From Macrostomum lignano (taxonomy: Eukaryota), in the NCBI GenBank assembly GCA_002269645.1, contig NIVC01001842.1, positions 167,135-231,134 of the forward strand: a DNA stretch of 64,000 bases, given 5' to 3'. The notes under the pieces were generated by a model. The model worked only from the letters and a program-made list of their open reading frames with translations. It ran no database searches and had not been told where the DNA came from. Positions 7,374 through 58,900 of the stretch are shown here, one piece after another; position 1 is the stretch's first letter; the number at the start of each line of letters is the position of its first letter. Both the position numbers and the translations under genes were made by a program.

Positions 7374-7449
7374 GCGGGAGGAATTACAGGTGCAAAAATA
7401 TAAGCAGAACTGTCACTGGAGAAAGTACGATGTCACTGCTATGCTAAAT

Positions 7450-29490: not shown

Positions 29491-30629
29491 CCTATATAGG
29501 CCTTAGATAGACATTGCCTGTCATTGTTACGTTACCAAATTAAATCTCCTTTTTTTGGGATCAGTCAAATAGCCTCCTTTATTTTACTTTCTCAAAATGC
29601 GCGGGCACCCTGGAAGTGACTTGTTGCCGAAGTGACTGTCACTGAAGTGACTGTCGCCAAAGTGACTTGTTGCCAACGTGATTATAATTCGTGTATGCAC
29701 ATGCTCCGAACTCTACTGTCTCTTTGACTCTTTTTATCTGTCCATAATCTGAAATGAAATGATGTGTGTGCCATGTGGGTTTGTTTACTGATGGATATCC
29801 ATGCATGTTTTCAGAACAATTTCCTATATATTTAATTTCAAACTTTTTTTGAGGATATAAAGGCCTACTTATAGATAGGCTATGGTTTTAAAGAATAAAG
29901 AACATTCGTTTTGCCTATTTTTCATTTTTCCTTTTTTGGCTCACTGGACTGCCTTTTTAGTGCACTTAATTTGACAAAAAGCCTGCCATTTACTTGATAG
30001 CTTTTGTGTGGCAAATTCAATGGTATAATCAGGTATAGGCCTATCTAGCAATCTAGGCCTCTAGGGGTATAAGACAAGATAGCCATTCAGTCTCACTCAC
30101 CAAGATGGATAGCCACAGTTCTGAATGTCTAAATAGATAAGAATAGGCCTAGGCCTAAATCTAATACATTTAAATTCTTGTTTTTATTTATAAATTATTT
30201 ATTAATAGTAACTGGTAATAAGTATCAACTATCAATACATCAACATAATATTAAGTATTGGAATGTCAAAAATGGTCATGTCCCTACACTTTTAAATTAA
30301 GAAGACCATCAATAGTACCTAGCCCCTCTTTTAAGCAATTTTTCTTTAAATAAAGTCCTATCATTTTTATGATTTTCAAATCATATATTCCACAAGCTGT
30401 TGAAACCCGCGGAATTTGAACCCGGGGAATTCCAATCCCCAGAACTATTTTTGCATGTATTCTGAAATCTGAGCCCATCTGAAACAAAAACTTGTTAATA
30501 GTTAGTTAGTAGGATAAAGGTAAACAAAAATGGAGTACATTCGCATACAATTAGGATGTGAGGCAAACATATTGTTGGCTGGGGTGCTTTTACTTTAAAT
30601 AGGCAATTAATGTCTGTCTGACTCTAAAA

Positions 30630-32049
30630 CATGTATTGGCAAACTCTGGCCTCTGCCTCTGACTCTCCCTACGTCCCTTGGATCCTTTGAAACTTCTATC
30701 TTCTCTTCTGTTTCCTCTCTTCTCTCTCGTCCCTTGTCTCTTTTCTCCTCTCTTCTCTTTTTTCTCTCTCCTCTCTCCCCTCTTCTCTCGTCTCTTCCCT
30801 CATTTCTCTTCTTTTTCATCTCTCTTATCTCATCTCTTTTCTCTTTCCTCTCCTCGCACTCTTCTCTTATATTTTCCTTCACCTCTCTTCTCTCGTCTTT
30901 ATTTGCTCTCTGATCTCTCCTTTCTCTTCTCTCTCTTCTCTTTTATCTATTTTCATTTCTCTCTGCTTCCCCCTCTCTCTCTGCTTCCCCCCTCTCTCTG
31001 CTTCCCCCTCTCTCTCTGCTTCCCCCTCTCTCTCTGCTTCCCCCTCTCTCTCTGCTTCCCCCTCTCTCTCTGCTTCCCCCTCTCTCTGCTTCCCCCTCTC
31101 TCTCTGCTTCCCCCCTCTCTCTCTGCTTCCCCCTCTCTCTCTGCTTCCCCCCTCTCTCTCTGCTTCCCCCTCTCTCTCTGCTTCCCCCCTCTCTCTCTGC
31201 TTCCCCCTCTCTCTCTGCTTCCCCCTCTCTCTCTGCTTCCCCCCTCTCTCTCTGCTTCCCCCCTCTCTCTCTGCTTCCCCCTCTCTCTCTGCTTCCCCCC
31301 TCTCTCTCTGCTTCCCCCTCTCTCTGCTTCCCCCCTGTATCTTATCTCTCCTCTCCCATCTTTCTTCTCCTCTCTACTCTCTCCCCTCCATTCTCCTCTT
31401 TTCTTTCCTCTCGCCTCACTCACTTCTCTCTCCCTTTGTCTCTCCTCTCGTCTCTGTAATCTCTACTCTCCCATCTCTCGTCTGTTCATTTTCGTCTCTG
31501 CTCTCAGCTCATCCCCCTCTTTCATCTGTCATCTTTACTGTCTTATATGTTCTCTCATTCTGTCCTCTCTGTACTCTTTTCTTTCACCTCTTTTGTCTCC
31601 TCACCTTCCTTTCTCCTTTCTCCTCTTCTCTTCCCTCTTCTATATACTCTCTCCCTCTCTTGTCTCGTCTCTTCTCTCTCCACTCTCCTCCTTTATCTCT
31701 CATCTCTCATTTCTCATCTCTCCTTTTTCCTCTTTACTAACTCCTCTCTGCTCTTCTCTCTGCTCTCCTCTCATCTGCAGCTCTCTGCTCTCTCCTCTCT
31801 ACTCGCTCCTCTACTCACTCCTCTACTCTCTCTCTACTCTCTCCTCTCTACTCGCTCCTCTCTATTCTCTCCTCTCATTGTCCTCGCTCCCTCATCTCTC
31901 CTATTATCTTTTATCTTTTCTCTTATTCTCTCTCTCACCTCTCCTCTCTTTTCGAATCGTCTATTCCTTCTTCTCTCCACTCTCAACTGCCCCTCAGCCA
32001 TAAGCAGGATTCTTTTCTGGCCTTTGAGGTAAGAGTCTGCCCATTCCTG
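30630..32049 (+). mobile_element. hAT-like MITE copy with expanded TC-rich interior (includes ~19-20-bp CTCTCTCTGCTTCCCC array 30960-31335)
   Basis: Degenerate TIRs catgtattggcaaact / agtctgcccattcctg; subterminal ggattct..tctggcc.ttgaggtaa shared with 42306-42731. Confidence 0.6.
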
Positions 32050-36940: not shown

Positions 36941-37847
36941 ATGTTTACAACTCAAAGCTCAAAAAAGAGGATATGCCAAATTGAAATTTAATGTGTGCCA
37001 AAGTGCCACCTAGCCTTCTAATGATTTGTGCCATTTGGGAAAAATTTAGCAAGGGCACAAATTTGGCACAAAACCCTAAATATAAGAGTGCAAAAAGGAG
37101 AGATTAGAGATAAGATAATAGATAAGGGAGTATAGACCATGAGAGAAGATAAGAACAGAGAGGAGAGAAAAAGATAAAAAATAAGTGAGTAAAGAGGAAA
37201 AAAAATAGGAGAGTCTCTGATGTAATATAGTATAGTATATAGTAGTAAAACTTTGTATAGGATAGTATTGCATGATATAATGCAATATTCTACTATACAA
37301 AATTTCATGCAGAAGATATAGCAAAGTTTTTTTTCAAGTCTAAAACATAGTGAGGATAGAAAAAAGTATTTTTGAGTAGCACACTTATGGTAGACATCTA
37401 GCACATTGTATACTTTAACCATACTTGAGCAGGCATGAATTATCTGCATTTAACTGCTCTGTTTATCAATTCAATGCACTGTGTCTGGGCCATATACCAT
37501 AGAAAAATTGAATCGCATATGATTGGCAATTGTCTTCATATGAATGCGCAAATTCTTTAATGAAATGAAAAGTATTATATTAAGAATATAACCATGTTTT
37601 ACTAAATAACTTATGTCTTTCTAACCATAACTGGCAAATATCTGAAACTTAAAGAAGTGTAATTCTCATTTGTTGGCCCATCAATCATAGAATCAAATTT
37701 GTAAACTTCGCCAGTAAAATCGAAAATTCACTTCAAAATTGTTTTTTTTTCAAACTTCTGGACGAACCAAGCGAAAAGCTAGGCCAAGATTTAGAGCAGC
37801 TGAAGCTGCTAGAAGAATGCCAGTTCGAATCAGAGGAGCCAGAGTCA

Positions 37848-38496
37848 ATGCGCATATCGCCATTGGCTAGTGTGGCGCTCTCTGCCAAACTGATGCCACT
37901 TTTCCAAGATCGGGTTGATGGCGAATTCTACGTGTTTGATGGCGACTCTTTACTGATGGAGGCTGCGGCCACAGTCGGATGGCAATATGGCCAGCAATTG
38001 CATTTGTTCTATCTGGCCGAATCCATTCTGAAACTGCTCAAAGATCACGGCGGTGACTGTCAAGTTGTTTACTTTAATAGTTTTCGCAATGATCCACTGA
38101 TGGATCTGTTTAGGCGCGCTATGCAGTTACACCTTGCCGTCAACTGTTCAGTGCCTGTGCACACCGACTTGGCCAAGTCTTGCTTCGACCCAGCCTGGCT
38201 TCACTATTTGAAGGAGGAGAAGCCTCTGTTCTTTATGCTTCACGACGGTGTTGGCTATGGCGAATCTGCTGAACAGCGGCATGTGAATTTGGCTTTGTCT
38301 AGCCTGGCTCGCAGGGTGCCAGTTGCTTATGTTAGCAGTCTGCAGCAGAATGACATGAAGCTGCAAGCATCCTATGTACAGTGGATGCCACTGTATGGCA
38401 GACTATTTCAAAAGCTATCATGTACAGATCGATCGGCAATGGTCCCTGAAACTGATGATCATGTTGAAGCTTTAAAGACTGAGGCCGAGTTAATTG
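37848..38496 (+). CDS. DDX60: DDX60-like exon 1 (PIN-like N-terminal region; true start uncertain)
   Basis: [10 protein letters not shown]...[11 protein letters not shown]; ATT G|gtacgt. Confidence 0.85.
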
Positions 38497-41400
38497 GTAC
38501 GTTTTTAAATCTCTTTATTAGTTGATTAAGTCATACATGCGCAACCCTCTGATTTACACTGGCCATGCGACTAACTTTTTGACCAAAAATGTGACTTACC
38601 TGTGAAAGGAACCCTAAAGAAATTAACGAAATGTTGGGTAAACGGCAAGAGTCACTACGACTGTCTTACTAAGGCTAAATGCCTCGTCAACTAATTAGTA
38701 CTACGCCTGTATGTTTTTGGGTGGGTATTTTTACCAGGTCGGCCAGCAGTTGCGCATGTATGGATTAAGTGTTTAAAAGCTTGTTTATTTAAACTGCTAA
38801 ACTAATAACTGTATGATTTTTGTTTCTGTTCAGAACCAGGCAGTCGCCTGAAAGACCATCTCGCTGTCAGAGTTGCTCTCCGAGCTCTAGTTAAAGATAC
38901 TAACATCGAAAGCAACGACGAAGCTATTGAAAAAGTGAGCCGTTGGTGCCTGTATTTTGCCTGCATGTCCTCCATGACGCTGGACGACCGGCTTCAGCTT
39001 GTTGCTGCTACTAAAAGCGCCAATCAAGCCGCTGCTGCAGGCGACAAGGTAGAGGAGCAAAATTTGCTCTCTTCCTTGCATGAATTGGCCAAGCACCTGC
39101 GGCTCGAACTGCTGCCAATGAAGGGTCTCAACGAGTTCGCCGATCCAGAGTCTGTCGCCGATCTTATCGACATTTTTGTCTATCGTCGATTTGGTCAAGC
39201 CTGGATTAACCAACTGCCCGGTTGGCATCCGCGAGCGCGATATATTTTGGCTAAGTAAGTTCAGGCTTCAGTTTTCCGTTGAATTATGCTACAGTTTTTT
39301 GTAATTTTTTAGTACACCTGCCTAAATGGGCAGGTGTGCTTCCTGCCCAGGCGCATCTGAAGGCTGCGTACGGCCGTTCAGTCCAAGGACTGGGGGGGGG
39401 GGGGTAGGGGTCGCCATACAGCCTCAATTACCCCAGCTAATGCTGATGGCACCCATTTTACAGCTGGGTGAACTGAAGCAATGCAGAGTTAAGTGTCTTG
39501 CTCAATCAAGGACACAAATTGTTCCGACTAAGTTGGACGATAGTGTACGGCCAGTATTGAATGAAAATCAATAGGTAAATTAACATGAAGCACATTGGTT
39601 AAAACGGTTTAATAGGCTTCCCGGCTGAGTTTTTAACTTATTGTGACCAGCACAGAAAGAGGAGGTCACGGACACAGAGTATTAACTTGTTAGATTTTTT
39701 ATTTATCCAGCACTCGCTGCATATTTCTTCGACAGCTTGCGGCAAACTATTTCAGGTTCAGCCTAGGGACCAGCAAATTCAGCTATGGTCCAACCATACT
39801 CCATAGACACGTATCTCGAAAAAAACCAGCTAACAAGTGGCGGTTGGTTGAGATTGGATGGCCCTATGCTGAGATAGCTAGGCAATGGGGGGTTGTCTGG
39901 AAGCGAGAAAACATGGTAATGGCCATAGACACGAGCGGCGATAGCGGGGGTGTGGGAGCGAAGCCCCCCCACTTACAACCATAGACTATTTTATCTTACG
40001 CTCATAGACTGGTTCGTTTTCTAAAATGATATCCCGGTTAATTGCTTGAATGTCATTGCAATTGCCTTAACGTAAATTACCATAGACATTTTGAACAATG
40101 GCTATGTTTTAACCGTGACTATAAAAACAACAGGACGGTAAATAGCTCGTATCTGTTAATTCTGATTTTTAGTGATGCTACGTTAATTTAAAATATTTTT
40201 ATACGGCGTTCGATTTCTTTCAGATACGAAAGCTACGCCTCTAAAATTTGTACCGAGCTGCAAAAGCTGAACAGTGCCGATCAATCGGATGCCTCGCCTC
40301 TATTGTCGCTGTCAATCTCTGAGCAGGCGCTCCCACATGAGCCTGTCATTGAGCAGGCGGCTGAAATGGCGCCGCTTCAGCGTATCGACAATCGTCTGTT
40401 GAAAGAGTTTGCCGGCGAAATTCTTGACAAACTCGGCTCGTCTGGTTGCATATCATTAACTAACGAGCCTGGACAGAACTCGGCGATGCTATTCGACGAG
40501 CGCTGTCATTGGCACGTTAATCGGGAGCTTCGCGACGATTTAGAAGAGCAAGGCGAGCCTGAGCTGTCTTCTAATCCTATTCTAAGGCAGAGACAGCTGA
40601 AGAGTATTCAGAAGTACAAGAATTACATCAGCATGTACGGCGAGTCGCTGCATGGCGAGACTAGCGAGACTATCGTACTGTCAACCGGTTCTGACGGCGC
40701 GTCCGCTGCATCTGCCGGTGCTAACGAGAAGCCGAAATCTGCTAACCAGCAAAAGCAGAAGCATCAGAAGCAGCCAAAAGGCAAGTCAAAGCCAGTTTCT
40801 AAGGCTGACGCCATCAAAGAAGAGAATTTGCGCGCCAAAGCCGACAAAGATACGAAGAAGCTAAAGGAGCAGTGGAAAAATCTGTTGCCGGGCGTTAAAA
40901 AATTAGAACCGGCTCAGGCTATCGCTGAGGCCACGCGTATGGCGGAGTCCTGCACAGTGCAGGATCGAATTTTCGAGGAGCCGGTACTTTTCGTAATGCG
41001 AGAGCAGTACAAGCTGTGGAAGACCAGCTGTGCTAGTAGTGGAGGCAGCGGTAAGTCTTTCAGCGCCTTGGCAGATCTAGTGCGGACCCTGCACAAGTAC
41101 ACAACTGAGCCGTTGGTTAGCATGATTAGTTCTGAATTGCGCGTCAAGATTGCCGAATTATTTATCATGGTTGGATTCAAAGAGGCTGCCGCTGTCTCTA
41201 GTGTAGACGCGGAGCGCTTAAAACATGTGCAAGTTGAAAAAGAATGCGTCTGTCCACTGAATTATCGCGACTTTCAAATGCAGCACATGGGCCACCTGAT
41301 GCAGAGAAATGTTCGATTCGATCCAGATCCCAGGGTGAAGGGATTCATTCCCGACACCTGGCAGAGAGAACTGCTTGATGTGGTTGACAGGCGCGAGTCT

Positions 41401-44400
41401 GCCGTTATTGTTGCTCCAACATCGTCTGGAAAAACATTCTGCTCTTACTACTGCATGAAAAAGGTTCTGGAGATGAGCGACGAGGCTGTCGCTGTTTACG
41501 TAGCGCCAACCAAAGCTTTAGTGAATCAGGTTCAGGCTTCCATTAGTGCCAGGTTTTCTAAGCCAAACCTGACTCCCGGCATGGAGCTATGCGGAGTATT
41601 CACTCGAGACTATAATCACAAAGCCACTAGCTGTCAGATTTTGGTGACAGTGCCGCAGTGCCTTGAACTGCTGTTGCTGAGTCCCAGGCGTCAAGGCTGG
41701 GCTAGCCGTATTCGCTATGTGATCTTTGACGAAGTTCACTGCATTGGCACCGGGATCGGGGCGTTGTCTGGGAATATCTGCTCTGCCTAATCCGGTGTCC
41801 GTTTCTTGCCCTGTCGGCAACTATCTCTAACAAAGACTATTTTCACGACTGGCTGCAGACCATCAAGCAGTTTGTGCAGGTTCAAGACTCGACTCTTCTG
41901 AAGCAATCTCAGCCGATGCAGCCTAAGAAGCAACAGCGACAGAAAGGTGCCGCTCCTGCTGCTGTAGAAGGTTACAAAGTGAATCTGGTATCCTACTCTG
42001 AGCGCTATTCAGACATTCGCACTTCCGTTTATCTGCCTAAGAGTGAATTTATTGCTGAAGTTAATCCGTGCGCTTTTCTTAGCGACAAACTATTGCGAAT
42101 CAACGGATTCCCAAGGAATTTAAAGCTGTCACCGAAGGAATCTACCGAGGTTTGGTCAGCCGCTTTGCAGTGCTTCACGGACGATCCAGCTGCAGCTAAG
42201 GCTCTGCAGAAATTTAAACCGCAATCGTTTTTTGGCACCGAGCCAATTACTAGGTAATAATTAATGAGCAATCATTTTTTAATGTCTTTAGCCTACCAGT
42301 TAAAGCAGGGATCAGCAAAACCCGGCCCGCCAAGCCTTTCTATCCGGCCCGCTCAAGGTTTGCGTCTCTGAGCTTTCTTCTCCCTTCTCTCCCTTCTCTT
42401 CTCCCTTCTCTCCCTTCTCTTCTCCCTTCTCTCCCTTCTCTTCCTTCTCCCTTCTCTCCCTTCTCCCTTCTCTCCCCTCTATCATCTCCCTTTTCTCTCC
42501 TCTCTCTCATCTCTCTTCTCTTTATTCTCTTCTCTCATTTCTCTCTCCCTTCTTTTCTCTCTACCCTCTCTTCTCTCCTCTTCCCTCTCTCCTCTCTGCT
42601 CTCCCTTCTCTCCCTTCTATCCTCTCTCCTGTCTACTCCTCTATTTCCTCTTCTATTTCTCTTCCTCTGCCTCACAGTCATGCGCCGGATTCTTCATCTG
42701 GCCCTTGAGGTAAAAAGTTTGCCAACCCCTGAGTAAGACTCTGAAAAGACAAAAGCATACTTGAGCAACACGAGGCGATTGGATATTTTCCGTGACAATA
42801 GCCAAAATAGCGATTTAAACTGTCAACTTAAATCTCAAAAGAAAAAAAAGAACTTATATTTTTAAGGTGCTTCCGATATTTTATAATGACCTCGTGTTGC
42901 ACCTGTAAGGTTTTGGCCCTAAAATTGTGAAACATTTCCCACCCACCGCTTCAATTTAAAAAAAACGCAGAACGCAATTTCGGGAACTGGAAGTTGGCCT
43001 GAAATCGACTGTGTCTGAGCTGCTTCGCCAGAGTCCACATGCCAAGTCTACCCAGCTGCTAACTACAATTCAGTCAATTGAGGAGCAGCAGAATGTGACT
43101 CAACAGTTTGAGTTCCTATCCGACGTTGATCTTATTGAAAAATTTCCCGATCTAATCGATCGGCTGCGTTCCGAGGGTCGCTTGCCAGCTTTGGTGTTTA
43201 TGAACGATCGTAAAGGCATTGAAAACCTTGCCGCGTCGCTTGTCGATCGAGCCAATGATCGGATTAAGCAAGCCGTTAATCCTAATCTGCTAGAGCGCAT
43301 GGAGAAAGCTCGCGAAGCGATGGCCATCGCCGCCAAGCGCAATCGCGACAAAGAGGATTCGGACGATGAGAATCCAGCCGAGATCGAATTGGAGTCCTAC
43401 TACAGAGATCGGCTGGAACTGCGCAGCAAAATTCAGGCCTGCGCTTATTTTAAACCGCAGGCTGTGCAAGAATCTTTTCTCAACAAAGTGCTGGAGAAGC
43501 TGCTTGATGAAGATGTGAAGCATATGCTGGAATTGGGCGTCTGCTATCATCATGCCGGTTGTTCTTCGAAGCACCGACAAGCTGTTGAGATGCTGTTCCG
43601 TAGCGGTCATTTGCAGGTTAGTTTGGGTTGTTTGCTTCTGTTGTTCAGCTTGGGCCATGGCTCTGAGTAGCTGCTTTGTTCCCCTCACCCCACCTTGTAA
43701 GCCGTTATGGAAATCAATCATTTTGCATCAGGTCGCTGAAATATAGTGCCTGCGGCGTTAAAGTGAGTGCTTGCGGCGCTTGCCTGCGGCGCTAAAATGA
43801 GTGCCTGCGGCGTTAAAGTGAGTGCTTGCGGCGCTTGCCTGCGGCGCTAAAATGAGTGCCTGCGGCGTTAAAGTGAGTGCTTGCGGCGCTTGCCTGCGGC
43901 GCTAAAATGAGTGCCTGCGGCGTTAAAGTGAGTGCTTGCGGCGCTTGCCTGCGGCGCTAAAATGAGTGCCTGCGGCGTTAAAGTGAGTGCTTGCGGCGCT
44001 TGCCTGCGGCGCTAAAATGAGTGCCTGCGGCGTTAAAGTGAGTGCTTGCGGCGCTTGCCTGCGGCGCTAAAATGAGTGCCTGCGGCGTTAAAGTGAGTGC
44101 TTGCGGCGCTTGCCTGCGGCGCTAAAATGAGTGCCTGCGGCGTTAAAGTGAGTGCTTGCGGCGCTTGCCTGCGGCGCTAAAATGAGTGCCTGCGGCGTTA
44201 AAGTGAGTGCTTGCGGCGCTTGCCTGCGGCGCTAAAATGAGTGCCTGCGGCGTTAAAGTGAGTGCTTGCGGCGCTTGCCTGCGGCGCTAAAATGAGTGCC
44301 TGCGGCGTTAAAGTGAGTGCTTGCGGCGCTTGCCTGCGGCGCTAAAATGAGTGCCTGCGGCGTTAAAGTGAGTGCTTGCGGCGCTTGCCTGCGGCGCTAA

Positions 44401-47400
44401 AATGAGTGCCTGCGGCGTTAAAGTGAGTGCTTGCGGCGCTTGCCTGCGGCGCTAAAATGAGTGCCTGCGGCGTTAAAGTGAGTGCTTGCGGCGCTTGCCT
44501 GCGGCGCTAAAATGAGTGCCTGCGGCGTTAAAGTGAGTGCTTGCGGCGCTTGCCTGCGGCGCTAAAATGAGTGCCTGCGGCGCTAAAATGAGTGCATGCG
44601 GCGATAATGTGAGTGCCTGCGGCGTTAAAGTGAGTGCTTGCGGCGCTAAAGTGAGTGCTTGCGGCGTTAAAGTGAGTGCTTGCGGCGCTAAAGTGAGTGC
44701 TTGCGGCGCTAAAGTGAGTGCTTGCGGTGCTAAAATGAGTGCCTGCGGCGCTAAAATGAGTGCCTGCGGCGTTAAAATGAGTGCCTGCGGCGTTAAAATG
44801 AGTGCCTGCGGCGTTAAAATGAGTGCCTGCGGCGCTAAAATGAGTGCCTGCGGCGCTAAAATGAGTGCCTGCGGCGCTAAAATGAGTGCCTGCGGCGCCA
44901 ATATGAGTGTCTTTGGCGCCAAAATGAGCGCCTGTCTGCGGCGCCAAAACGAGTGCCTGTGATAGTAAAATGAGTGCCTGCGGTGCAAAAATGTGCGCCT
45001 GTGGCGCGAAAATGAGCGCTAACAATACCGATTCCCAAAATAATTTGCATGTAGGAATTTAGTCATGTACATGTAGAATTCTTGGCTTTATCCCCTCTTC
45101 CCACTATAAAATCCCATAGTGTTTTACTTTGGAATCTCTCTCGCGCCCCGTGCAGGTGGTCACAGCAACTGCCACCCTGGCTCTGGGCGTTCACATGCCC
45201 TGCAAAACTGTCGTATTCGCTGGCGATGACAAGTTTCTGGACGCGCTCAACTATCACCAGATGGCCGGTCGGTCCGGCCGGCGTGGCTTCGACAACATCG
45301 GCAACATTGTGTTCTACGGCGTGCCCGCCTCTAAGATTGCTCACCTGATCCAAGCCGACCTGCCCGAACTCAAGGGCGGCTTTCCGCTCACCTGCGCTTT
45401 CGTTCTCAGACTGTTGCTTCTGACTGGGAATGCCACTGATCCGGAGGTGGCCCACGCTAAAGCTGCTACGGTTTTGGAGCACCCGTTTGCTGCGCACCAG
45501 AAGCCGGATATGATGCAGCAATTGCGATTGTTCTTCCTGTTCAGTGCGGAGTTTCTGCACAGGCAGGATCTTATTAATGAGTTGGGCGCTCCTCTGGTGA
45601 GTCTCATTGAGTAACAATTTGGCACCGTGTGTTTTTCCCAAGCTGGATGCCATTTAGTCTAAGAGTCCTTTCACAGTCGTTGCAGGTAACACAGGTAAAA
45701 TAGTGAAAGAAGTGACTCTCTAGACGACTATAAAACGACGAGAGTCAATTTGAGGCGTTTTATTACCCGCGACTTTGAAACTAACAACTGTGTACATTTA
45801 GTCTACTTGTGTTAGTAGAAAGTTAAGCTTTAACAACGACTTTTTTGCGACTCCTTGTTTTACGATTCTCTGCAACTCACGTGACTCGCTCTCTGTCATT
45901 CTTCAGGACCTGGCCGGCTTAGTATGCCACATGGGCTACCAGCAGCCTGGCAACTTCGTGCTCACCTATCTGCTTCGATCTCCCGCTCTGCGCCAGCTGT
46001 GCGAGCCGGCTAGCAAACAGCTGCCGCCAATTCACTACGGATTCTATTGCGAGGGCTGTCAGACTGGCGAACCGATAGTTGGTCAGCGATTCAAGTGCAC
46101 CAAGTGCTGGTCTGACTACAGCCTGTGCTCCAACTGCTACTCCGGCCGACCCAATCACAGCCGGGGCCGGCAGCAGCACACGGCCGCCGATTTTGAGCGT
46201 CAATTGCCGCCGTTGCGAGTGCAATTCTCCGATGAGACGTTGAGAAAATTGGTTCGAATCCTGTGCCACCTGTTCACTAAGATGGAGCTGGCCCGGTCTC
46301 TGGTTAAAAGGACGGCTGATGGAGCTCTGCATTATTTAAGGTAATAAAATACCTGCCGTTTTTCCGCTAGAATCATTGATGCCGATTGGTAAACCTCTGA
46401 CAAAATACGTTTATCTTTGCTGATATGCTTTTACCCTACTAGTAGTAGTTCATGCTTGGAAAATGTTTGTGACAGGGATAGACAGAGTTTCTCTACAAAT
46501 ATAGAGCAGCTAAGACACAGAGTGTACATTCCTCAGGGGTATGGTTTTGTCTCGCATAGAAACGCCTAACCGCAGTACCCCTGTGACACTTGTCTCTGCC
46601 TGGCTGAAATCTTGTAATGAGTTAGTAGGCTGGGTTGGAGGGTAATAGTGGATCAGGAAGGGCTGTGGGTAGCTGTATAGGAAGGCAGGCCTATACCTGT
46701 TCCAGTTGATGCTCTGACGGTCTCCCTCGGAGTGCCCTCTGAGCGAACAGCCAGCGACCCTTTTAAAGCTGGATCAGCATTGGTCAAATGACTAACTAAC
46801 TTACTAACCCGGAGAAGGCACGGGCTTCCCTGATTGGTTCACTCAACCCTCTCTAGCCCCGGGGAGGTTTTGATTTGAGCTTGGAGTAGGTGCGACGCCC
46901 CGACGGTAGAGGGTAGGGCCCGCCCTCAGCCCGACTGGTGTCGCCTGCTCGGCTTGATGGCCACAGTTTCTCTTAGCCTAGCTTAGAAACCTAGTGTACA
47001 TTAGTACACTCCCAACTTGGATCCTAATTCATTCCTAGTGGCGTAAAAGCCTGTTCAGTGGCTGAGGCGCCTTATTACTAATTTTAGTTAGTTAGTGTAC
47101 ATTCCTCAGGGCCGCCAGGGTCGCAGTGCGTGCCTGCGTACATTGTAATCTCTCCCTCTCTGATTTCCAGGCCAACCGAGAACTCCAAGGTGCTTCTGAA
47201 GCCGCTGCCAACCGACATCGGATCGGCAGTCCATGACTACAACGCTGCCACAGCTGTGACTTACACCAATTACCTGCGCTGCATTGCCAAGTCTGGCCTG
47301 TTGAAATTCTCCACCGCTCTGCCGTTCAGCCGGTCCGCTCCCGTTGTGCCTAGCAGCAATAGCCAACTCCAAGTGTCAGCGGTGGCCCCCCTGGCCCGGC

Positions 47401-47798
47401 TGTCCTGGGGTCCCACTACTCCGGACTCGAACAAAGCACTCGATCGCGTGCTATTGAACGGCGGTAACAACAGCTCGGAACAGTTGCGTCGCCTGCTGCC
47501 ATTGGAGATCGTCACCGATGCGAATTTGATTCCGCTGCTGCCTACCAAGCGACTGTTAAACGCCTACGCTTTGGACTTTTTCACTCACTGCAGTCTGGCT
47601 TCGATTGTTCGCGACAATGGTATTCGTGTTGGCGATTTGTTCGACTTGCTCAAAGACTTCTTGCTGGCCTGCAGGGCTGTGTCCACTTTGCTGGCTCAGC
47701 TGGCCGCTGATCCCGACGATCCGGTGGTGTGCGCCTTCAAACAGGTGTCATTCGAGTACAAGGAGCGTTTTCAAAAAGCCTTCCCTGGCGCGCGTTGA
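37848..47798 (+). CDS. DDX60: DDX60-like Ski2-family DExD/H RNA helicase with inserted ZZ zinc finger (~1749 aa if the frameshift at 41758-41761 is corrected)
   Basis: Exons 37848-38496, 38834-39254, 40224-42253, 42971-43616, 45156-45596, 45907-46340, 47171-47798; phases 1,2,2,0,0,2 consistent. [17 protein letters not shown]-terminus, [45 protein letters not shown]. Confidence 0.9.
38834..39254 (+). CDS. DDX60: DDX60-like exon 2
   Basis: ttctgttcag|AA CCA GGC...; ends GCT AA|gtaagt. Confidence 0.85.
39325..39560 (+). mobile_element. SINE fragment with V-domain-like core (DDX60 intron 2)
   Basis: ggcacccattttacagctgggtgaactgaagcaatgcagagttaagtgtcttgctcaatcaaggacacaa (39448-39517) resembles the V-SINE core from memory. 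Confidence 0.5.
40224..42253 (+). CDS. DDX60: DDX60-like exon 3 (RecA1 domain; contains -1 frameshift at 41758-41761)
   Basis: tttctttcag|A TAC GAA; motifs Q, I, Ia, II, then III in the -1 frame; ACT AG|gtaata. Confidence 0.88.
42306..42731 (+). mobile_element. hAT-type MITE (DDX60 intron 3)
   Basis: TIRs CAGGGATCAGCAAA / TTTGCCAACCCCTG; subterminal CGGCCCGC; TC-rich filler; 8-bp flanks only 5/8 identical. Confidence 0.7.
42971..43616 (+). CDS. DDX60: DDX60-like exon 4 (RecA2, motif IV)
   Basis: aacgcag|A ACG CAA; [12 protein letters not shown]; GVCYHHAG; GHLQ|gttagt. Confidence 0.9.
43745..45015. repeat. 21-bp minisatellite with 55-bp higher-order block (DDX60 intron 4)
   Basis: tgcctgcggcgctaaaatga recurs at 43781+55n up to 44551, followed by diverged 21-mers. 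Confidence 0.96.
45156..45596 (+). CDS. DDX60: DDX60-like exon 5 (motifs V-VI)
   Basis: [21 protein letters not shown]...[10 protein letters not shown]. Confidence 0.93.
45907..46340 (+). CDS. DDX60: DDX60-like exon 6 containing ZZ-type zinc finger
   Basis: [17 protein letters not shown]...CEGC...CTKC...CSNC...H(x6)H...LVRILCHLF. Confidence 0.9.
46521..47111. mobile_element. 555-bp insertion bounded by an exact 18-bp direct repeat (DDX60 intron 6)
   Basis: AGTGTACATTCCTCAGGG at 46521-46538 and 47094-47111; (TTAG)n next to the right repeat; class unknown. Confidence 0.7.
47171..47798 (+). CDS. DDX60: DDX60-like last exon
   Basis: tgatttccag|G CCA ACC; [10 protein letters not shown]; [16 protein letters not shown]; TGA at 47796-47798. 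Confidence 0.9.
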
Positions 47799-47944: not shown

Positions 47945-48640
47945 TGTTTCTTAGAATCTCTCCCAAGCCGTTTCCTAGAATCGTAACCAAGCCGTTTCTT
48001 AGAATCGTACCAAGAGGTTTCTTAGAATCATCAATAACCCTTGTTTTAGAATCTTTCACAGGCCGGCTCTTAGAATCGTTTCCAAGTGAGTTCTTAAAAT
48101 ATTTACCGATTTTTTTCTTAGAATCGTACCAAGAGTTTCTTAGAATCGTACCAAAAGTTTCTTAGAAACGTCCCAAGAGGTTTCTTAGAATCGTTCCAAG
48201 AGTTTCTTCGAATCGTACCAAGAATTTCTTAGAATCGTACCAAGAGTTTCTTAGAATCGTACCAAGAGTTTCTTAGAATCGTACCAAGAGGTTTCTTAGA
48301 ATGGTTTCCAAGTCCTTTATTAAAATATTTACCAATTTTTTTCTTAAAACCGTTACCAAGTTTTAAATATAATCGTTTCCCAACTCTTATTTTGAATCTT
48401 TCCGAGTCCAAATTTTAGAATCACCCACCAGTCTGTTCTTGGAATCGTAATCGGATTGTTTCTTAGAATTTTCTCTCAGCTTCTTTCTTAGAATTATCAA
48501 TATGTCTCTTCGTAGAATTGTTCTCAACCTTTCTCAGAATCTTTCTTAGAAAGTTTGCCAAATTGTTTCTTAGAATCCTTACAAATTTTTTGCAATTGTT
48601 TCACAACCCTGACTTGGAATCGTTATCAAGTCGTTTCTTA
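47945..48640. repeat. ~22-bp degenerate minisatellite 3' of DDX60
   Basis: gtttcttagaatcgtaccaaga. Confidence 0.85.
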
Positions 48641-49920: not shown

Positions 49921-52900
49921 AACTGTGCAGTGTCTGTACAGTGTTTAACTGCAGGTGTCTGTAGAGTGCTTAACTACAGGTGTCTGTAGAGTGCTTAACT
50001 GCAGGTGTCTGTAGAGTGCTTAACTGCAGGTGTCTGTAGAGTGTTTAACTACAGGTGTCTGTAGAGTGCTTAACTGCCTGTCAGAGTGCTTATCTACAAA
50101 GAGTCCGTAGAGTGCTTAACTGCAGGTGTCTGTAGAGTGCTTAACTGCAGGTGTCTGTAGAGTTTAACTGCAGGTGTCTGTAGAGTGCTTAACTGCAGGT
50201 GTCTGTAGAGTTTAACTGCAGGTGTCTGTAGAGTGCTTAACTGCAGGTGTCTGTAGAGTGCTTAACTGCAAGTGTCTGTAGAGTGCTTAACTACAGGTGT
50301 CTGTAGAGTGCTTAACTGCCTGTCAGAGTGCTTATCTACAAAGAGTCCGTAGAGTGCTTAACTGCAGGTGTCTGTAGAGTGTTTAACTGCAGGTGTCTGT
50401 AGAGTGCTTAACTGCAGGTGTCTGTAGAGTGCTTAACTGCAGGTGTCTGTAGAGTTAAACTGCAGGTGTCTGTAGAGTGCTTAACTGCATGTGTCTGTAG
50501 AGTGCTTAACTGCAAGTGTCTGTAGAGTGTTTAACTGCAAGTGTCTGTAGAGTGTTTAACTGCAGGTGTCTGTAGAGTGCTTAACTGCAGGTGTCTGTAG
50601 AGTGCTTAACTGCAGGTGTCTGTAGAGTGCTCAACTGCAGGTGTCTGTAGAGTGTTTAACTGCAGGTGTCTGTAGAGTGCTTAACTGCAGGTGTCTGTAG
50701 AGTGCTCAACTGCAGGTGTCTGTAGAGTGCTCAACTGCAGGTGTCTGTAGAGTGCTTAACTGCAGGTGTCTGTAGAGTGCTCAACTGCAGGTGTCTGTAG
50801 AGTGTTTAACTGCAGGTGTCTGTAGAGTGCTTAACTACAGGTGTCTGTAGAGTGCTTAACTGCAGGTGTCTGTAGAGTGTTTAACTGCAGGTGTCTGTAG
50901 AGTGCTTAACTACAGGTGTCTGTAGAGTGCTTAACTGCAGGTGTCTGTAGAGTGTTTAACTGCAGGTGTCTGTAGAGTGCTTAACTACAGGTGTCTGTAG
51001 AGTGCTTAACTGCCTGTCAGAGTGCTTATCTACAAAGAGTCCGTAGAGTGCTTAACTGCAGGTGTCTGTAGAGTGCTTAACTGCAGGTGTCTGTAGAGTG
51101 TTTAACTGCAGGTGTCCGTAGAGTGCTTAACTGCAGGTGTCTGTAGAGTGTTTAACTGCAGGTGTCTGTAGAGTGCTTAACTGCAGGTGTCTGTAGAGTG
51201 CTTAACTGCAGGTGTCTGTAGAGTTTAACTGCAGGTGTCTGTAGAGTGCTTAACTGCAGGTGTCTGTAGAGTGCTTAACTGCAAGTGTCTGTAGAGTGCT
51301 TAACTGCAAGTGTCTGTAGAGTGTTTAACTGCAAGTGTCTGTAGAGTGTTTAACTGCCTGTCAGAGTGCTTATCTACAAAGAGTCCGTAGAGTGCCAGCT
51401 TTACTGCAGGTGTCTGTAGAGTGTTTAACTGCAGGTGTCTGTAGAGTGTTTAACTGCAGGTGTCTGTAGAGTGCTTAACTGCAGGTGTCTGTAGAGTGTT
51501 TAACTGCAGGTGTCTGTAGAGTGTTTAACTGCAGGTGTCTGTAGAGTGCTTAACTGCAGGTGTCTGTAGAGTGTTTAACTGCCTGTCAGAGTGCTTATCT
51601 ACAAAGAGTCCGTAGAGTGCCAGCTTAACTGCAGGTGTCTGTAGAGTGTTTAACTGCAGGTGTCTGTAGAGTGTTTAACTGCAAGTGTCTGTAGAGTGTT
51701 TAACTGCAGGTGTCTGTAGAGTGCTTAACTGCAGGTGTCTGTAGAGTGCTTAACTGCAGGTGTCTGTAGAGTGTTTAACTGCAGGTGTCTGTAGAGTGCT
51801 TAACTGCAGGTGTCTGTAGAGTGCTTAACTGCAGGTGTCTGTAGAGTTTAACTGCAGGTGTCTGTAGAGTGCTTAACTGCATGTGTCTGTAGAGTGCTTA
51901 ACTGCAAGTGTCTGTAGAGTGTTTAACTGCAAGTGTCTGTAGAGTGTTTAACTGCAGGTGTCTGTAGAGTGCTTAACTGCAGGTGTCTGTAGAGTGCTTA
52001 ACTGCAGGTGTCTGTAGAGTGCTCAACTGCAGGTGTCTGTAGAGTGTTTAACTGCAGGTGTCTGTAGAGTGCTTAACTGCAGGTGTCTGTAGAGTGCTTA
52101 ACTGCAGGTGTCTGTAGACTTTAACTGCAGGTGTCTGTAGAGTGCTTAACTGCAGGTGTCTGTAGAGTGCTTAACTGCAAGTGTCTGTAGAGTGTTTAAC
52201 TGCAGGTGTCTGTAGAGTGCTTAACTGCAGGTGTCTGTAGAGTGTTTAACTGCAGGTGTCCGTAGAGTGCTTAACTGCAGGTGTCTGTAGAGTGTTTAAC
52301 TGCCTGTCAGAGTGCTTATCTACAAAAAGTCCGTAGAGTGCTTAACTGCAGGTGACTGTAGAGTGTTTAACTGCAGGTGTCTGTAGAGTGCTTAACTGCA
52401 GGTGTCTGTAGAGTGTTTAACTACAGGTGTCTGTAGAGTGCTTAACTGCAGGTGTCTGTAGAGTGTTTAACTGCAGGTGTCTGTAGAGTGCTTAACTGCA
52501 GGTGTCTGTAGAGTGCTTAACTGCAGGTGTCTGTAGACTTTAACTGCAGGTGTCTGTAGAGTGCTTAACTGCAGGTGTCTGTAGAGTGCTTAACTGCAAG
52601 TGTCTGTAGAGTGCTTAACTGCAAGTGTCTGTAGAGTGTTTAACTGCAAGTGTCTGTAGAGTGTTTAACTGCCTGTCAGAGTGCTTATCTACAAAGAGTC
52701 CGTAGAGTGCCAGCTTTACTGCAGGTGTCTGTAGAGTGTTTAACTGCAGGTGTCTGTAGAGTGTTTAACTGCAGGTGTCTGTAGAGTGCTTAACTGCAGG
52801 TGTCTGTAGAGTGTTTAACTGCCTGTCAGAGTGCTTATCTACAAAGAGTCCGTAGAGTGCCAGCTTAACTGCAGGTGTCTGTAGAGTGTTTAACTGCAGG

Positions 52901-55900
52901 TGTCTGTAGAGTGTTTAACTGCAAGTGTCTGTAGAGTGTTTAACTGCAGGTGTCTGTAGAGTGCTTAACTGCAGGTGTCTGTAGAGTGCTTAACTGCAAG
53001 TGTCTGTAGAGTGTTTAACTGCAAGTGTCTGTAGAGTGTTTAACTGCAGGTGTCTGTAGAGTGCTTAACTGCAGGTGTCTGTAGAGTGTTTAACTGCAGG
53101 TGTCTGTAGAGTGTTTAACTGCAGGTGTCTGTAAAGTGTTTAACTGCAAGTGTCTGTAGAGTGTTTAACTGCAGGTGTCTGTAGAGTGCTTAACTGCAGG
53201 TGTCTGTAGAGTGCTTAACTGCAAGTGTCTGTAGAGTGTTTAACTGCAAGTGTCTGTAGAGTGTTTAACTGCAGGTGTCTGTAGAGTGCTTAACTGCAGG
53301 TGTCTGTAGAGTGCTTAACTGCAGGTGTCTGTAGAGTGCTTAACTGCAGGTGTCTGTAGAGTTTAACTGCAGGTGTCTGTAGAGTGCATAACTGCAGGTG
53401 TCTGTAGAGTGCTTAACTGCAGGTGTCTGTAGAGTGCTTAACTGCAAGTGTCTGTAGAGTGTTTAACTGCAAGTGTCTGTAGAGTGTTTAACTGCCTGTC
53501 AGAGTGCTTATCTACAAAGAGTCCGTAGAGTGCCAGCTTAACTGCAGGTGTCTGTAGAGTGTTTAACTGCAGGTGTCTGTAGAGTGTTTAACTGCAGGTG
53601 TCTGTAGAGTGCTTAACTGCAGGTGTCTGTAGAGTGTTTAACTTCCTGTCAGAGTGCTTATCTACAAAGAGTCCGTAGAGTGCCAGCTTAACTGCAGGTG
53701 TCTGTAGAGTGTTTAACTGCAGGTGTCTGTAGAGTGCTTAACTACAGGTGTCTGTAGAGTGCTTAACTGCAGGAGTCTGTAGAGTGTTTAACTGCAGGTG
53801 TCTGTAGAGTGCTTAACTACAGGTGTCTGTAGAGTGCTTAACTGCAGGTGTCTGTAGAGTGTTTAACTGCAGGTGTCTGTAGAGTGCTTAACTGCAGGTG
53901 TCTGTAGAGTGCTTAACTGCAGGTGTCTGTAGAGTTTAACTGCAGGTGTCTGTAGAGTGCTTAACTGCAGGTGTCTGTAGAGTGCTTAACTGCAAGTGTC
54001 TGTAGAGTGCTTAACTGCAAGTGTCTGTAGAGTGTTTAACTGCAGGTGTCTGTAGAGTGTTTAACTGCAAGTGTCTGTAGAGTGCTTAACTGCAAGTGTC
54101 TGTAGAGTGTTTAACTGCAAGTGTCTGTAGAGTGTTTAACTGCCTGTCAGAGTGCTTATCTACAAAGAGTCCGTAGAGTGCCAGCTTAACTGCAGGTGTC
54201 TGTAGAGTGTTTAACTGCAGGTGTCTGTAGAGTGTTTAACTGCAGGTGTCTGTAGAGTGCTTAACTGCAGGTGTCTGTAGAGTGTTTAACTGCAGGTGTC
54301 TGTAGAGTGCTTAACTACAGGTGTCTGTAGAGTGCTTAACTGCAGGTGTCTGTAGAGTGTTTAACTGCAGGTGTCTGTAAAGTGCTTAACTACAGGTGTC
54401 TGTAGAGTGCTTAACTGCAAGTGTCTGTAGAGTGTTTAACTGCAGGTGTCTGTAGAGTGCTTAACTACAGGTGTCTGTAGAGTGCTTAACTGCAGGTGTC
54501 TGTAGAGTGTTTAACTGCCTGTCAGAGTGCTTATCTACAAGAGTCTGTAGAGTGCCAGCTTAACTGCAGGTGTCTGTAGAGTGTTTAACTGCAGGTGTCT
54601 GTAGAGTGCTTAACTACAGGTGTCTGTAGAGTGCTTAACTGCAGGTGTCTGTAGAGTGTTTAACTGCAGGTGTCTGTAGAGTGCTTAACTACAGGTGTCT
54701 GTAGAGTGCTTAACTGCAGGTGTCTGTAGAGTGTTTAACTGCAGTGTCTGTAGAGTGTTTAACTGCAGGTGTCTGTAGAGTGCTTAACTGCAGGTGTCTG
54801 TAGAGTGTTTAACTGCAGGTGTCTGTAGAGTGTTTAACTGCAGGTGTCTGTAGAGTGCTTAACTGCAGGTGTCTGTAGAGTGCTTAACTGCAAGTGTCTG
54901 TAGAGTGTTTAACTGCAAGTGTCTGTAGAGTGTTTAACTGCAGTGTCTGTAGAGTGTTTAACTGCAGGTGTCTGTAGAGTGCTTAACTGCAGGTGTCTGT
55001 AGAGTGCTTAACTGCAGGTGTCTGTAGAGTGCTTAACTGCAGGTGTCTGTAGAGTTTAACTGCAGGTGTCTGTAGAGTGCTTAACTGCAGGTGTCTGTAG
55101 AGTGCTTAACTGCAGGTGTCTTTAGAGTGCTTAACTGCAAGTGTCTGTAGAGTGCTTAACTGCAGGTGTCTGTAGAGTGTTTAACTGCAGGTGTCTGTAG
55201 AGTGCTTAACTACAGGTGTCTGTAGAGTGCTTAACTGCCTGTCAGAGTGCTTATCTACAAAGAGTCCGTAGAGTGCTTAACTGCAGGTGTCTGTAGAGTG
55301 CTTAACTGCAGGTGTCTGTAGAGTGTTTAACTGCAGGTGTCTGTAGAGTGCTTAACTGCAGGTGTCTGTAGAGTGCTTAACTGCAGTGTCTGTAGAGTGT
55401 TTAACTGCAGTGTCTGTAGAGTGTTTAACTGCAGGTGTCTGTAGAGTGCTTAACTGCAGGTGTCTGTAGAGTGTTTAACTGCAGTGTCTGTAGAGTGTTA
55501 ACTGCAGTGTCTGTAGAGTGTTAACTGCAGGTGTCTGTAGAGTGTTAACTGCAGTGTCTGTAGAGTGTTTAACTGCAGGTGTCTGTAGAGTGCTTAACTG
55601 CAGGTGTCTGTAGAGTGCTTAACTGCAGGTGTCTGTAGAGTGTTTAACTGCAGTGTCTGTAGAGTGTTTAACTGCAGGTGTCTGTAGAGTGCTTAACTGC
55701 AGGTGTCTGTAGAGTGCTTAACTGCAGGTGTCTGTAGAGTGCTTAACTGCAGGTGTCTGTAGAGTTTAACTGCAGGTGTCTGTAGAGTGCTTAACTGCAG
55801 GTGTCTGTAGAGTGCTTAACTGCAGGTGTCTGTAGAGTGCTTAACTGCAGGTGTCTGTAGAGTGTTTAACTGCAGGTGTCTGTAGAGTGTTTAACTGCCT

Positions 55901-58900
55901 GTCAGAGTGCTTATCTACAAAGAGTCCGTAGAGTGCCAGCTTAACTGCAGGTGTCTGTAGAGTGTTTAACTGCAGGTGTCTGTAGAGTGTTTAACTGCAG
56001 GTGTCTGTAGAGTGCTTAACTGCAGGTGTCTGTAGAGTGTTTAACTGCCTGTCAGAGTGCTTATCTACAAAGAGTCCGTAGAGTGCTTAACTGCAGGTGT
56101 CTGTAGAGTGTTTAACTGCAGGTGTCTGTAGAGTGCTTAACTGCAGGTGTCTGTAGAGTGCTTAACTGCAGGTGTCTGTAGAGTGTTTAACTGCAGGTGT
56201 CTGTAGAGTGCTTAACTACAGGTGTCTGTAGAGTGCTTAACTGCAGGTGTCTGTAGAGTGTTTAACTGCAGGTGTCTGTAGAGTGCTTAACTGCAGGTGT
56301 CTGTAGAGTGCTTAACTGCAGGTGTCTGTAGAGTGTTAACTGCAGGTGTCTGTAGAGTGCTTAACTGCAGGTGTCTGTAGAGTGCTTAACTGCAGTGTCT
56401 GTAGAGTGCTTAACTGCAGGTGTCTGTAGAGTGTTTAACTGCAGTGTCTGTAGAGTGCTTAACTGCAGTGTCTGTAGAGTGTTAACTGCAAGTGTCTGTA
56501 GAGTGTTTAACTGCTGTCAGAGTGCTTATCTACAAAGAGTCCGTAGAGTGCCAGCTTAACTGCAGGTGTCTGTAGAGTGTTTAACTGCAGGTGTCTGTAG
56601 AGTGTTTAACTGCAGGTGTCTGTAGAGTGCTTAACTGCAGGTGTCTGTAGAGTGTTTAACTGCCTGTCAGAGTGCTTATCTACAAAGAGTCTAGAGTGCC
56701 AGCTTAACTGCAGGTGTCTGTAGAGTGTTTAACTGCAGGTGTCTGTAGAGTGCTTAACTACAGGTGTCTGTAGAGTGCTTAACTGCAGGTGTCTGTAGAG
56801 TGTTTAACTGCAGGTGTCTGTAAGTGCTTAACTACAGGTGTCTGTAGAGTGCTTAACTGCAGTGTCTGTAGAGTGTTTAACTGCAGGTGTCTGTAGAGTG
56901 CTTAACTACAGGTGTCTGTAGAGTGCTTAACTGCAGGTGTCTGTAGAGTGTTTAACTGCCTGTCAGAGTGCTTATCTACAGAGTCTGTAGAGTGCTTAAC
57001 TGCAGGTGTCTGTAGAGTGTTTAACTGCAGGTGTCTGTAGAGTGCTTAACTGCAGGTGTCTGTAGAGTGCTTAACTGCAGGTGTCTGTAGAGTGTTTAAC
57101 TGCAGGTGTCTGTAGAGTGCTTAACTACAGGTGTCTGTAGAGTGCTTAACTGCAGGTGTCTGTAGAGTGTTAACTGCAGTGTCTGTAGAGTGTTTAACTG
57201 CAAGTGTCTGTAGAGTGTTAACTGCAGGTGTCTGTAGAGTGTTTAACTGCAGGTGTCTGTAAGTGCTTAACTCAGGTGTCTGTAGAGTGCTTAACTGCAG
57301 GTGTCTGTAGAGTGCTTAACTGCAGGTGTCAGAGTGTTTAATGCAGTGTCTGTAAGTGTAACTGCAGGTGTCTGTAGAGTGCTTAACTGCAGGTGTCTGT
57401 AGAGTGCTTAACTGCAGGTGTCTGTAGAGTGCTTTAACTGCAGGTGTCTGTAGAGTGTTTAACTGCAGTGTCTGTAGAGTGCTTAACTGCAGGTGTCTGT
57501 AGAGTGCTTAACTGCAGGTCTGTAAGTGTTAACTGCAAGTGTCTGTAGATGTTAACTGCAGTGTCTGTAGAGTGTTTAACTGCCTGTCAGAGTGCTTACT
57601 ACAAGAGTCCGTAGAGTGCTTAACTGCAGTGTCTGTAGAGTGTTTAACTGCAGGTGTCTGTAGAGTGTTAACTGCAGGTGTCTGTAGAGTGCTTAACTGC
57701 AGGTGTCTGTAGAGTGTTAACTGCAGTGTCTGTAGAGTGTTAACTGCAGGTGTCTGTAGAGTGCTTAACTGCAGGTGTCTGTAGATGCTTAACTGCAGGT
57801 GTCTGTAGAGTGCTTAACTGCAAGGTGTCTGTAGAGTGCTTAACTGCAGTGTCTGTAGAGTGCTTTAACTGAGGTGTCTGTAGAGTGTTTAACTGCCTGT
57901 AAGTGCTTACAGAGTGCTAGATGCAGCTTAACTGCAGGTGTCTGTAGAAGTGTTTAACTGCAGGTGTCTGTAGAGTGTTAACTGCAGGTGTCTGTAGAGT
58001 GCTTAACTGCAGGTGTCTGTAGAGTGCTTTAACTGCTGTAGAGTGCTCTACAGAGTTAGAGTGCTTAACTGCAGTGTCTGTAGAGTGTTTAACTGCAGGT
58101 GTCTGTAGAGTGTTAACTGCAGGTGTCTGTAGAGTGCTTTAACTGCAGGTGTCTGTAGAGTTTTTAACTGCAGGTGTTGTAGAGTGCTTAACTACAGGTG
58201 TCTGTAGAGTGCTTAACTGCAGTGTCTGTAGAGTGTTTTAACTGCAGGTGTCTGTAGAGTGCTTAACTACAGGTGTCTGTAGAGTGCTTAACTGCAGGTG
58301 TCTGTAGAGTGTTTAACTGCCTGTAGAGTGCTCTGTTAGAGTGCTTAACTGCAGGTGTCTGTAGAGTGCTTTAACTGGCAGGTGTCTGTAGAGTGCTTAA
58401 CTGCAGGTGTCTGTAGAGTGCTTAACTGCAGGTGTCTGTAGAGTGTTTAACTGCAGGTGTCTGTAGAGTGCTTTAACTGCAGGTGTCTGTAGAGTGCTTA
58501 ACTGCCTGTAGAGTGCTCTAAGAGTGTAGAGTGCTTAACTGCAGGTGTCTGTAGAGTGCTTACTGCAGGTGTCTGTAGAGTTTAACTGCAGGTGTCTGTA
58601 GAGTGCTTAACTGCAGGTGTCTGTAGAGTGTTAACTGGCAGGTGTCTGTAGAGTGCTTAACTGCAGGTGTCTGTAGAGTGCTTAACTGCAGGTGTCTGTA
58701 GAGTGCTTAACTGCAGGTGTCTGTAGAGTGCTTAAACTGCCTGTCAGAGTGCTTATCTACAGGTCGTAGAGTGCTTAACTGCAGGTGTCTGTAAGTGCTT
58801 TAACTGCAGGTGTCTGTAGAGTGCTTAACTGCAGGTGTCTGTAGAGTCTTAACTGCAGGTGTCTGTAGAGTGCTTAACTGCAGGTGTCTGTAGAGTGCTT

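Follow-up and report, generated by a model that had tools for sequence, protein, structure and literature searches.

Does the genome of Macrostomum lignano encode a DDX60-type helicase with a zinc finger built into its C-terminal region, and what would such a finger do there? The question was raised by a stretch of 64,000 nucleotides (contig NIVC01001842.1 of assembly GCA_002269645.1, positions 167,135 to 231,134 of the forward strand), which was analysed as a whole and is called the window in the following. An initial annotation, made from the DNA letters, had proposed a ZZ-type zinc finger inside the C-terminal region of a DDX60 helicase encoded in the window. Vertebrate DDX60 and DDX60L are interferon-induced Ski2-like helicases. 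The analysis presented here points to a rare, lineage-restricted internal ZZ insertion in DDX60, which is a modest variant of domain architecture, undescribed in the literature found.

The insert is a genuine ZZ domain as judged from its profile score, its zinc ligands and its predicted fold, and it is predicted to bind zinc. The Pfam profile of the domain (PF00569, gathering score 21.4) gave 30.8 bits with the peptide of exon 6, 32.6 bits (E=6.8e-8) with the insert alone and 25.8 bits with the whole conceptual protein, where the domain was placed at amino acids 1438-1476; the Pfam alignment ends at profile position 37-38 of 45, short of the His pair. All eight zinc ligands are nevertheless present in cross-brace order, as CEGC, CTKC and CSNC followed by two His residues spaced H-x6-H, and the full ligand pattern claimed by the initial annotation was thereby borne out. 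The top sequence matches in the PDB were all ZZ domains, namely those of HERC2 (E=1.7e-7), PRT1, MIB1, p62 and KCMF1, with E-values up to 8e-4. Since the Pfam score lies above the gathering threshold and the best PDB matches are without exception ZZ domains, the identity of the domain goes beyond a chance resemblance.

Structure prediction led in the same direction. AlphaFold2 run on the single sequence of the region gave an unusable model (pLDDT 39). A rerun on the C-terminal 500 residues, using an alignment of 86 rows that included generic ZZ segments, reached a mean pLDDT of 86 and a pTM of 0.84, with values of 90-97 for the ZZ itself. Using Foldseek on this model, the ZZ part was matched to the ZZ domain of PRT1 (8zg9_E and 8zga_D) with a probability of 1.00 and a TM-score of 0.61-0.64 (target-normalised), and the core was matched best to Ski2 and Mtr4; the comparison with viral structures gave no relevant match. 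AlphaFold had been suggested beforehand as a check for an insertion in a surface loop, and the model does place a confident ZZ in a loop that is short in other DDX60 proteins. With the ZZ domains of HERC2, PRT1, p62/SQSTM1, KCMF1 and MIB1, the domain shares the cross-brace of C-x2-C, C-x2-C, C-x2-C and two His, and its predicted fold superposes on the ZZ of PRT1. It differs from them in the spacing of the His pair, which exceeds the usual one (H-x1-3-H in these known domains), and in its setting, a helicase instead of an E3 ligase or an autophagy receptor.

Alignments with other members of the family indicate that the ZZ segment is a true insertion of ~65 residues and no chance match, because only ~6-8 residues are found at this site in other DDX60 proteins. 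This is the case in alpaca, boat-billed heron, urchin (Lytechinus), coral (Porites), Aspergillus and in kDDX60 from T. cruzi, where the motif LCxP is followed after this short linker by FSxxxxxxLVxVLxHLF. In exon 6 of the window gene, LCEP stands upstream of the ZZ and a motif of the FSxxxxxxLVxVLxHLF type downstream. The statement of the initial annotation that the two flanking motifs are nearly adjacent in vertebrate DDX60 was therefore correct for alpaca and heron. The same applies to the claim that vertebrate DDX60 has no ZZ, as far as the named DDX60 proteins examined are concerned; in contrast to the window gene, none of the proteins from alpaca, heron, urchin, coral and Aspergillus carries the ~65-residue ZZ insertion. 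The domain had been delimited at 46033-46200, of which the start was confirmed, while the ZZ peptide ends earlier, at 46179.

The location of the insert within the helicase was deduced from the predicted structure and from profile alignments. The C-terminal region of the protein can be aligned over its whole length with DDX60 homologues, and the DDX60 profile aligns with kDDX60, for which a solved structure exists (7ase_f, E=2e-56), straight through the insertion site, where kDDX60 has a short loop. With Hel308, the profile alignment stops at the insertion point. In the secondary structure predicted by AlphaFold2 (numbered along the 500-residue query), the ZZ occupies residues 189-250; it is preceded by helices at 150-155 and 162-178, and followed by a helix at 256-270 and a small hairpin at 280-290. 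We infer from this model that the ZZ would sit in the loop after the third helix of the C-terminal winged-helix domain and project where this domain joins the ratchet/helical region. Presumably, this is also the general region that gives rise to the arch in Ski2 and Mtr4. Like the ZZ, the arch of Ski2/Mtr4 and the inserts of k-DDX60 are accessory modules in the post-RecA2 region, and these known modules dock adaptors or the ribosome. Their folds are unrelated to the ZZ, being a stalk plus KOW/beta-barrel in the arch of Ski2/Mtr4 and a helix in the k-DDX60 insert.

The insertion is contained entirely in exon 6, and flanking introns are absent from all three lineages in which it was found: the surrounding sequence is part of one exon in the window and free of introns in the other two (L001, L002 and L003). 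Exon shuffling with flanking introns was rejected for the present-day gene on these grounds, in agreement with the view of the initial annotation that simple exon shuffling does not apply. At the protein level, a short direct repeat stands on either side of the ZZ, as KQLPPI (46018-46029) and RQLPPL (46201-46212). This QLPP pair is also present in the M. lignano paralogue described below and is absent from the two metagenomic lineages; a target-site duplication was considered as its origin and judged unlikely given the two lineages without the repeat, which is probably coincidental.

The exon 6 peptide was compared with 1.84 billion representative proteins in an exhaustive phmmer search. The top match was UniRef100_A0A1I8FWF1 (P0032), a M. 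lignano protein annotated as 'Helicase ATP-binding domain-containing protein' (87% identity, E=2.8e-82), which is 87.6% identical to the window product over 1480 amino acids. It displays the same ZZ at the same site with all ligands (Pfam ZZ 22.6-28.4 bits), and differs from the window by seven substitutions in the 49-residue ZZ, one of which turns the E of the first acidic position into V. Relative to the window gene, A0A1I8FWF1 represents either a different copy (a paralogue or homeologue) or the gene of a congener, and its model lacks exon 2 and the C-terminus. Two further lineages are known from metagenomes. In the first (the TARA lineage; P0068/P0182, recovered from scaffolds of the ENA and TARA Oceans metagenomes and from a Logan contig), an insert at the same site has all eight ligands and a ZZ score of 21.6 bits, with 33% identity to the window in the insertion region; its closest named relatives are from coral and bird, at 35-36% identity. 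The second (P0001/P0183, ENA metagenomes, 40-45% identical) also has an insert at this site, which scores 19.4 bits; it has retained the first zinc site and lost the second CxxC and the His pair, in an intact open reading frame (ORF).

In a neighbour-joining tree computed without the insert columns, the ZZ-bearing sequences cluster together. The simplest reading of these sequence data is one old, lineage-restricted insertion common to the Macrostomum copies and at least two metagenomic eukaryote lineages. PF00569 is in no precomputed Pfam list of the homologues returned from the DDX60 searches. The remaining top phmmer matches were generic multi-ZZ proteins, either NBR1/p62-like receptors or a kinase. 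Other helicases with a ZZ were looked for among these matches by scanning P0039 and seven of the nine matches longer than 1000 amino acids; all were NBR1-like multi-ZZ autophagy receptors or a kinase, and none was a helicase. Both P0032 and P0068 were found by the exhaustive representative search. The word-index search had a poor recall: queried with the C-terminal 500 amino acids, it yielded no more than 31 proteins, among which the M. lignano protein (87% identical) was absent, and queried with a profile built from the four sequences that carry the insert, it yielded just 4 short fragments. The combination of ZZ and DDX60 is thus a rare architecture that is already in UniProt (A0A1I8FWF1) and has gone unremarked. 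The novelty implied by the initial annotation is reduced accordingly to the literature, where full-text searching turned up no publication that relates DDX60 to a ZZ domain or to flatworms.

Evidence at the transcript level was obtained for the TARA lineage. The Logan contig L004 (ERR6349624) follows the genomic scaffolds L002 and L003 from position 293 on, with an identity of 99.8%. Upstream of this point it diverges (L004 1-292 versus L002 1-286), exactly at the genomic acceptor ...ccatttccag, and continues into a different upstream exon; the gene of this lineage is otherwise intronless over 5.2 kb. Because the identity begins exactly at the genomic acceptor, L004 can be identified as a spliced mRNA from the gene of the TARA lineage, and the ZZ is kept in this mRNA. 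This argues against a removal of the insert from the mRNA in that lineage.

Ligand-binding ZZ domains grip the free N-terminal amine of their target by three acidic residues, which are D129, D147 and D149 in p62. These positions were compared between the 52 closest generic ZZ segments and the four DDX60-ZZ sequences. At the position of D129, Asp is present in 49 of the 52 generic segments, and is replaced by E in the window, V in P0032, T in P0068 and V in P0001. For D147, Asp occurs in 40/52 generic segments, and the DDX60-ZZ sequences have D (window), D (P0032), E (P0068) and Q (P0001). The position of D149 is Asp in all but two of the generic segments (50/52), and S, S, C and D, respectively, in the same four proteins. 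For the window copy, the initial annotation had assigned these positions correctly (D129 to E, D147 kept, D149 to S). Across the DDX60-ZZ sequences, the acidic cage is not conserved, even between the two Macrostomum copies. In addition, the C4-C5 loop, which forms the pocket, has one extra residue (Trp) in the ZZ of the window.

These data bear directly on the possibility that the ZZ is a working N-terminus reader like those of p62, HERC2, PRT1 and KCMF1, through which the helicase would be connected with N-degron, autophagy or ubiquitin pathways, possibly with a changed residue preference. Such a role would fit with the closest solved relatives by sequence and fold, which are all readers of this kind (HERC2 for SUMO1 or H3, PRT1 for aromatic degrons, p62 for Arg, and KCMF1), with the nearest generic ZZ sequences being NBR1/p62-like autophagy receptors, and with the window copy, which holds two of the three acidic positions conservatively (E and D). 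It conflicts with the variability in DDX60-ZZ of an acidic triad that is mostly Asp in generic ZZ domains, with Val at the first acidic position of the 87%-identical paralogue, with the additional Trp in the pocket loop and with the lineage devoid of the second zinc site. A reader role of this type is decidedly unlikely, and the link to N-degron, autophagy or ubiquitin signalling made by the initial annotation was overstated. Because the acidic cage is not conserved in the clade and one lineage lacks the second zinc site, the specificity of DDX60-ZZ is most likely not the classical read-out of Arg/N-degrons or of the histone H3 tail. A more specific version would have the ZZ read a particular free N-terminus or short tail, such as neo-N-termini produced by viral or host proteases or the tail of a ribosomal or ubiquitin-like protein, and thereby bring a Ski2-like helicase of RNA surveillance into physical contact with an N-degron or proteolysis signal, in a clade of invertebrates that are marine and free-living. 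This is a long shot; no helicase is known to combine the sensing of RNA with the recognition of N-termini.

The reading that is preferred here considers the ZZ as a zinc-stabilised docking module with non-canonical specificity. Its probability is estimated at roughly 0.55, a figure that includes the identity of the ZZ and the shared insertion. The ZZ would form a rigid, zinc-stabilised module projecting from the helicase core and would tether the helicase to a partner, perhaps the ribosome, an RNA or a protein bound by its tail or by a short motif. The analogy is with the arch insertions of Ski2/Mtr4 and with the lineage-specific inserts of k-DDX60 that contact the 43S complex. Indeed, k-DDX60 contacts the 43S complex mostly via domains and insertions that mammalian DDX60 lacks (PMC7773551), and invertebrate DDX60 proteins of cnidarians and brachiopods are fused to TRADD-N/Death-like adaptor domains (Kaur et al., 2021, PMC8195603).

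The ZZ could alternatively be a tolerated structural insertion without a ligand, a small zinc knot that landed in a surface loop where it is harmless, and that persists there as a unit with a fold of its own. The lineages share only 33-40% identity in the insert, with ~10 invariant positions that are mostly ligands; P0001/P0183 have an intact reading frame, with a second zinc site that has lost its CxxC and its His ligands; and every other DDX60 works without an insert. On the other hand, at least three lineages with an overall identity of no more than ~40-45% have retained the whole length of the insert, two of them with all eight ligands. Within Macrostomum, the ZZ is conserved like the rest of the protein (86% versus 87.6%). 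Full-length retention, ligand conservation and the conservation within Macrostomum together argue for some function, and the high confidence of the AlphaFold2 model suggests a defined orientation. A tolerated insert is rated as less probable than a docking module, but as an alternative to be taken seriously.

Several points weigh against the docking module and the single insertion behind it. The bootstrap value for a single ZZ-bearing clade is only 50%. The loss of the second zinc site in P0001 and the variable surface residues fit a tolerated structural insert as well. The equivalence of the insertion point with the arch of Ski2/Mtr4 is only presumed, on the basis of predicted secondary structure. 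Finally, the window copy is frameshifted and may make no protein at all.

The host protein is assigned to the DDX60 family of Ski2-like helicases because the conceptual protein displays the architecture of PIN-like_DDX60, DEAD and Helicase_C (PF00271, amino acids 1216-1293, 37.7 bits) domains in the Pfam scan. Motif II reads DEVH in the translated sequence. The C-terminal 500 amino acids are 35-47% identical to DDX60 orthologues, and vertebrate DDX60/DDX60L as well as invertebrate and fungal orthologues share with the window protein the PIN-like_DDX60, DEAD and Helicase_C domains and probably also the winged-helix and the C-terminal helical region. The DDX60-type winged-helix profile (PF26076) is precomputed on every homologue found; the Pfam copy scanned here gave no PF26076, even on P0001, which has it among its precomputed domains. 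All 12 splice sites of the gene model (Table 1) are canonical GT/AG. The first ATG was taken as start codon, which leaves the 5' end uncertain. The frame is open upstream of this ATG (37653-37847) and resembles there the N-terminus of A0A1I8FWF1 (KLGQDLEQLKLLEECQFE versus NLGKDLEQLRLQTECQFE), the model of which extends farther upstream than the start of the window gene. The true 5' end may differ from the model, for example by an upstream exon or by trans-splicing.

The coding sequence amounts to 5249 nt (2 mod 3), and the addition of one base results in a single ORF of 1749 codons with no further defect. The missing base is a G in a homopolymer inside the DEAD domain, a defect that was missed by the initial annotation. 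The uncorrected frame stops nine codons after the G-run, and the M. lignano paralogue reads GIGGIVWEYLL across the site. A tiny intron at 41761 was considered in place of a frameshift and rejected, as a GT...AG pair is lacking and the conserved residues leave no space for an intron. The missing G is either a homopolymer error of the assembly or the mark of a very recent pseudogene. In the latter case, which concerns this locus only and is compatible with any reading of the ZZ, the window gene would be a recently inactivated copy in a polyploid genome, with an idle ZZ. The early stop inside the DEAD domain and the existence of the intact-looking paralogue A0A1I8FWF1 are in line with inactivation, and two publications (PMC5704211, PMC10468722) describe M. 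lignano as a hidden polyploid with many duplicated genes. Against it, the frameshift is the sole defect in 5.25 kb of coding sequence, next to 12 canonical splice sites and no other stop, and a single-base error in homopolymer length is the commonest artefact of long-read assemblies. Inactivation of the window copy is therefore regarded as unlikely.

Table 1. Coordinates of the DDX60 gene, its ZZ insertion and the other features of the window.
Feature	Position	Strand	Remarks
DDX60-family Ski2-like helicase gene	37848..47798	+	7 exons, TGA stop; conceptual product 1749 aa
Exons of the DDX60 gene	37848-38496, 38834-39254, 40224-42253, 42971-43616, 45156-45596, 45907-46340, 47171-47798	+	
PIN-like_DDX60 (PF23002), DDX60-specific N-terminal domain	37881..38414	+	aa 12-189, 92.9 bits
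DEAD/DEAH helicase domain (RecA1), PF00270	41362..41834	+	aa 737-894, 78.9 bits; frameshift inside; coordinates derived from gene model
1-bp frameshift	41758..41761	+	GGGG where the intact gene needs five G; between motif II and LSAT, inside DEAD domain
Exon 6	45907..46340	+	boundaries ttcttcag/GACCTG and TTTAAG/gtaata; codes for end of winged-helix, whole ZZ insertion and next helix
Full insertion (ASKQLPP...PPLRVQ)	46009..46224	+	72 aa by alignment, at the short linker of ZZ-less DDX60
ZZ-type zinc finger core	46033..46179	+	49 residues, frame 0
Potassium-channel-like gene, exons	722-4275	-	pore region matches Ion_trans_2/Ion_trans
Signal recognition particle receptor beta subunit	6753-7412	-	single ORF of 220 aa; Pfam SRPRB, 126 bits
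Protein kinase gene, exons	13870-19074	-	Pkinase on three ORF pieces
Repeat-derived long ORFs	267-845, 14347-15289, 15878-16740, 17380-18309, 19068-19766, 30611-32029, 44476-45058	both	translated micro-/minisatellites, no genes
Short tandem array	48000-48339		22-bp unit TTTCTTAGAATCGTACCAAGAG, 111-bp higher-order period
Satellite array	49926-64000		25-bp unit TGCAGGTGTCTGTAGAGTGCTTAAC, ~570 copies, ~89% matches

The neighbourhood of the DDX60 gene is rich in repeats. The short tandem array lies just past its 3' end, and 2.1 kb downstream of the stop codon begins the satellite array, which spans at least 14 kb and runs off the end of the window. The repeat-derived ORFs translate into patterns such as THSLTHS..., TTSLATQL... 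and LSPLFS..., and one of them fills the 1.5-kb intron between exons 4 and 5 of the DDX60 gene. The potassium-channel-like gene has by eye a KCNQ-like GYGD...WWGVITVT, and the kinase gene, with its long microsatellite-filled introns, has by eye the look of a MAP2K-type enzyme.

DDX60 is a poorly understood helicase that has been implicated in antiviral defence, and no structural mapping of a direct partner is known from animals. If the ZZ is a dedicated interaction module, its small size and its fixed place on the surface could help to identify the docking targets of DDX60-type helicases. RNA interference is available in M. lignano, and established methods for its transgenesis are described in PMC7053086. 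The practical significance is limited by the rarity of the architecture, its presence in UniProt, the unconserved canonical ligand residues and a window copy that is possibly broken. As with the TRADD-N/Death fusions of cnidarian and brachiopod DDX60 (PMC8195603), the ZZ is a lineage-specific gain of a putative protein-interaction domain; these fusions are terminal and involve death-fold adaptors, whereas the window DDX60 has an internal zinc finger insertion. The predicted ZZ adds an internal zinc-finger insertion to the habit of invertebrate DDX60 proteins of gaining adaptor domains.

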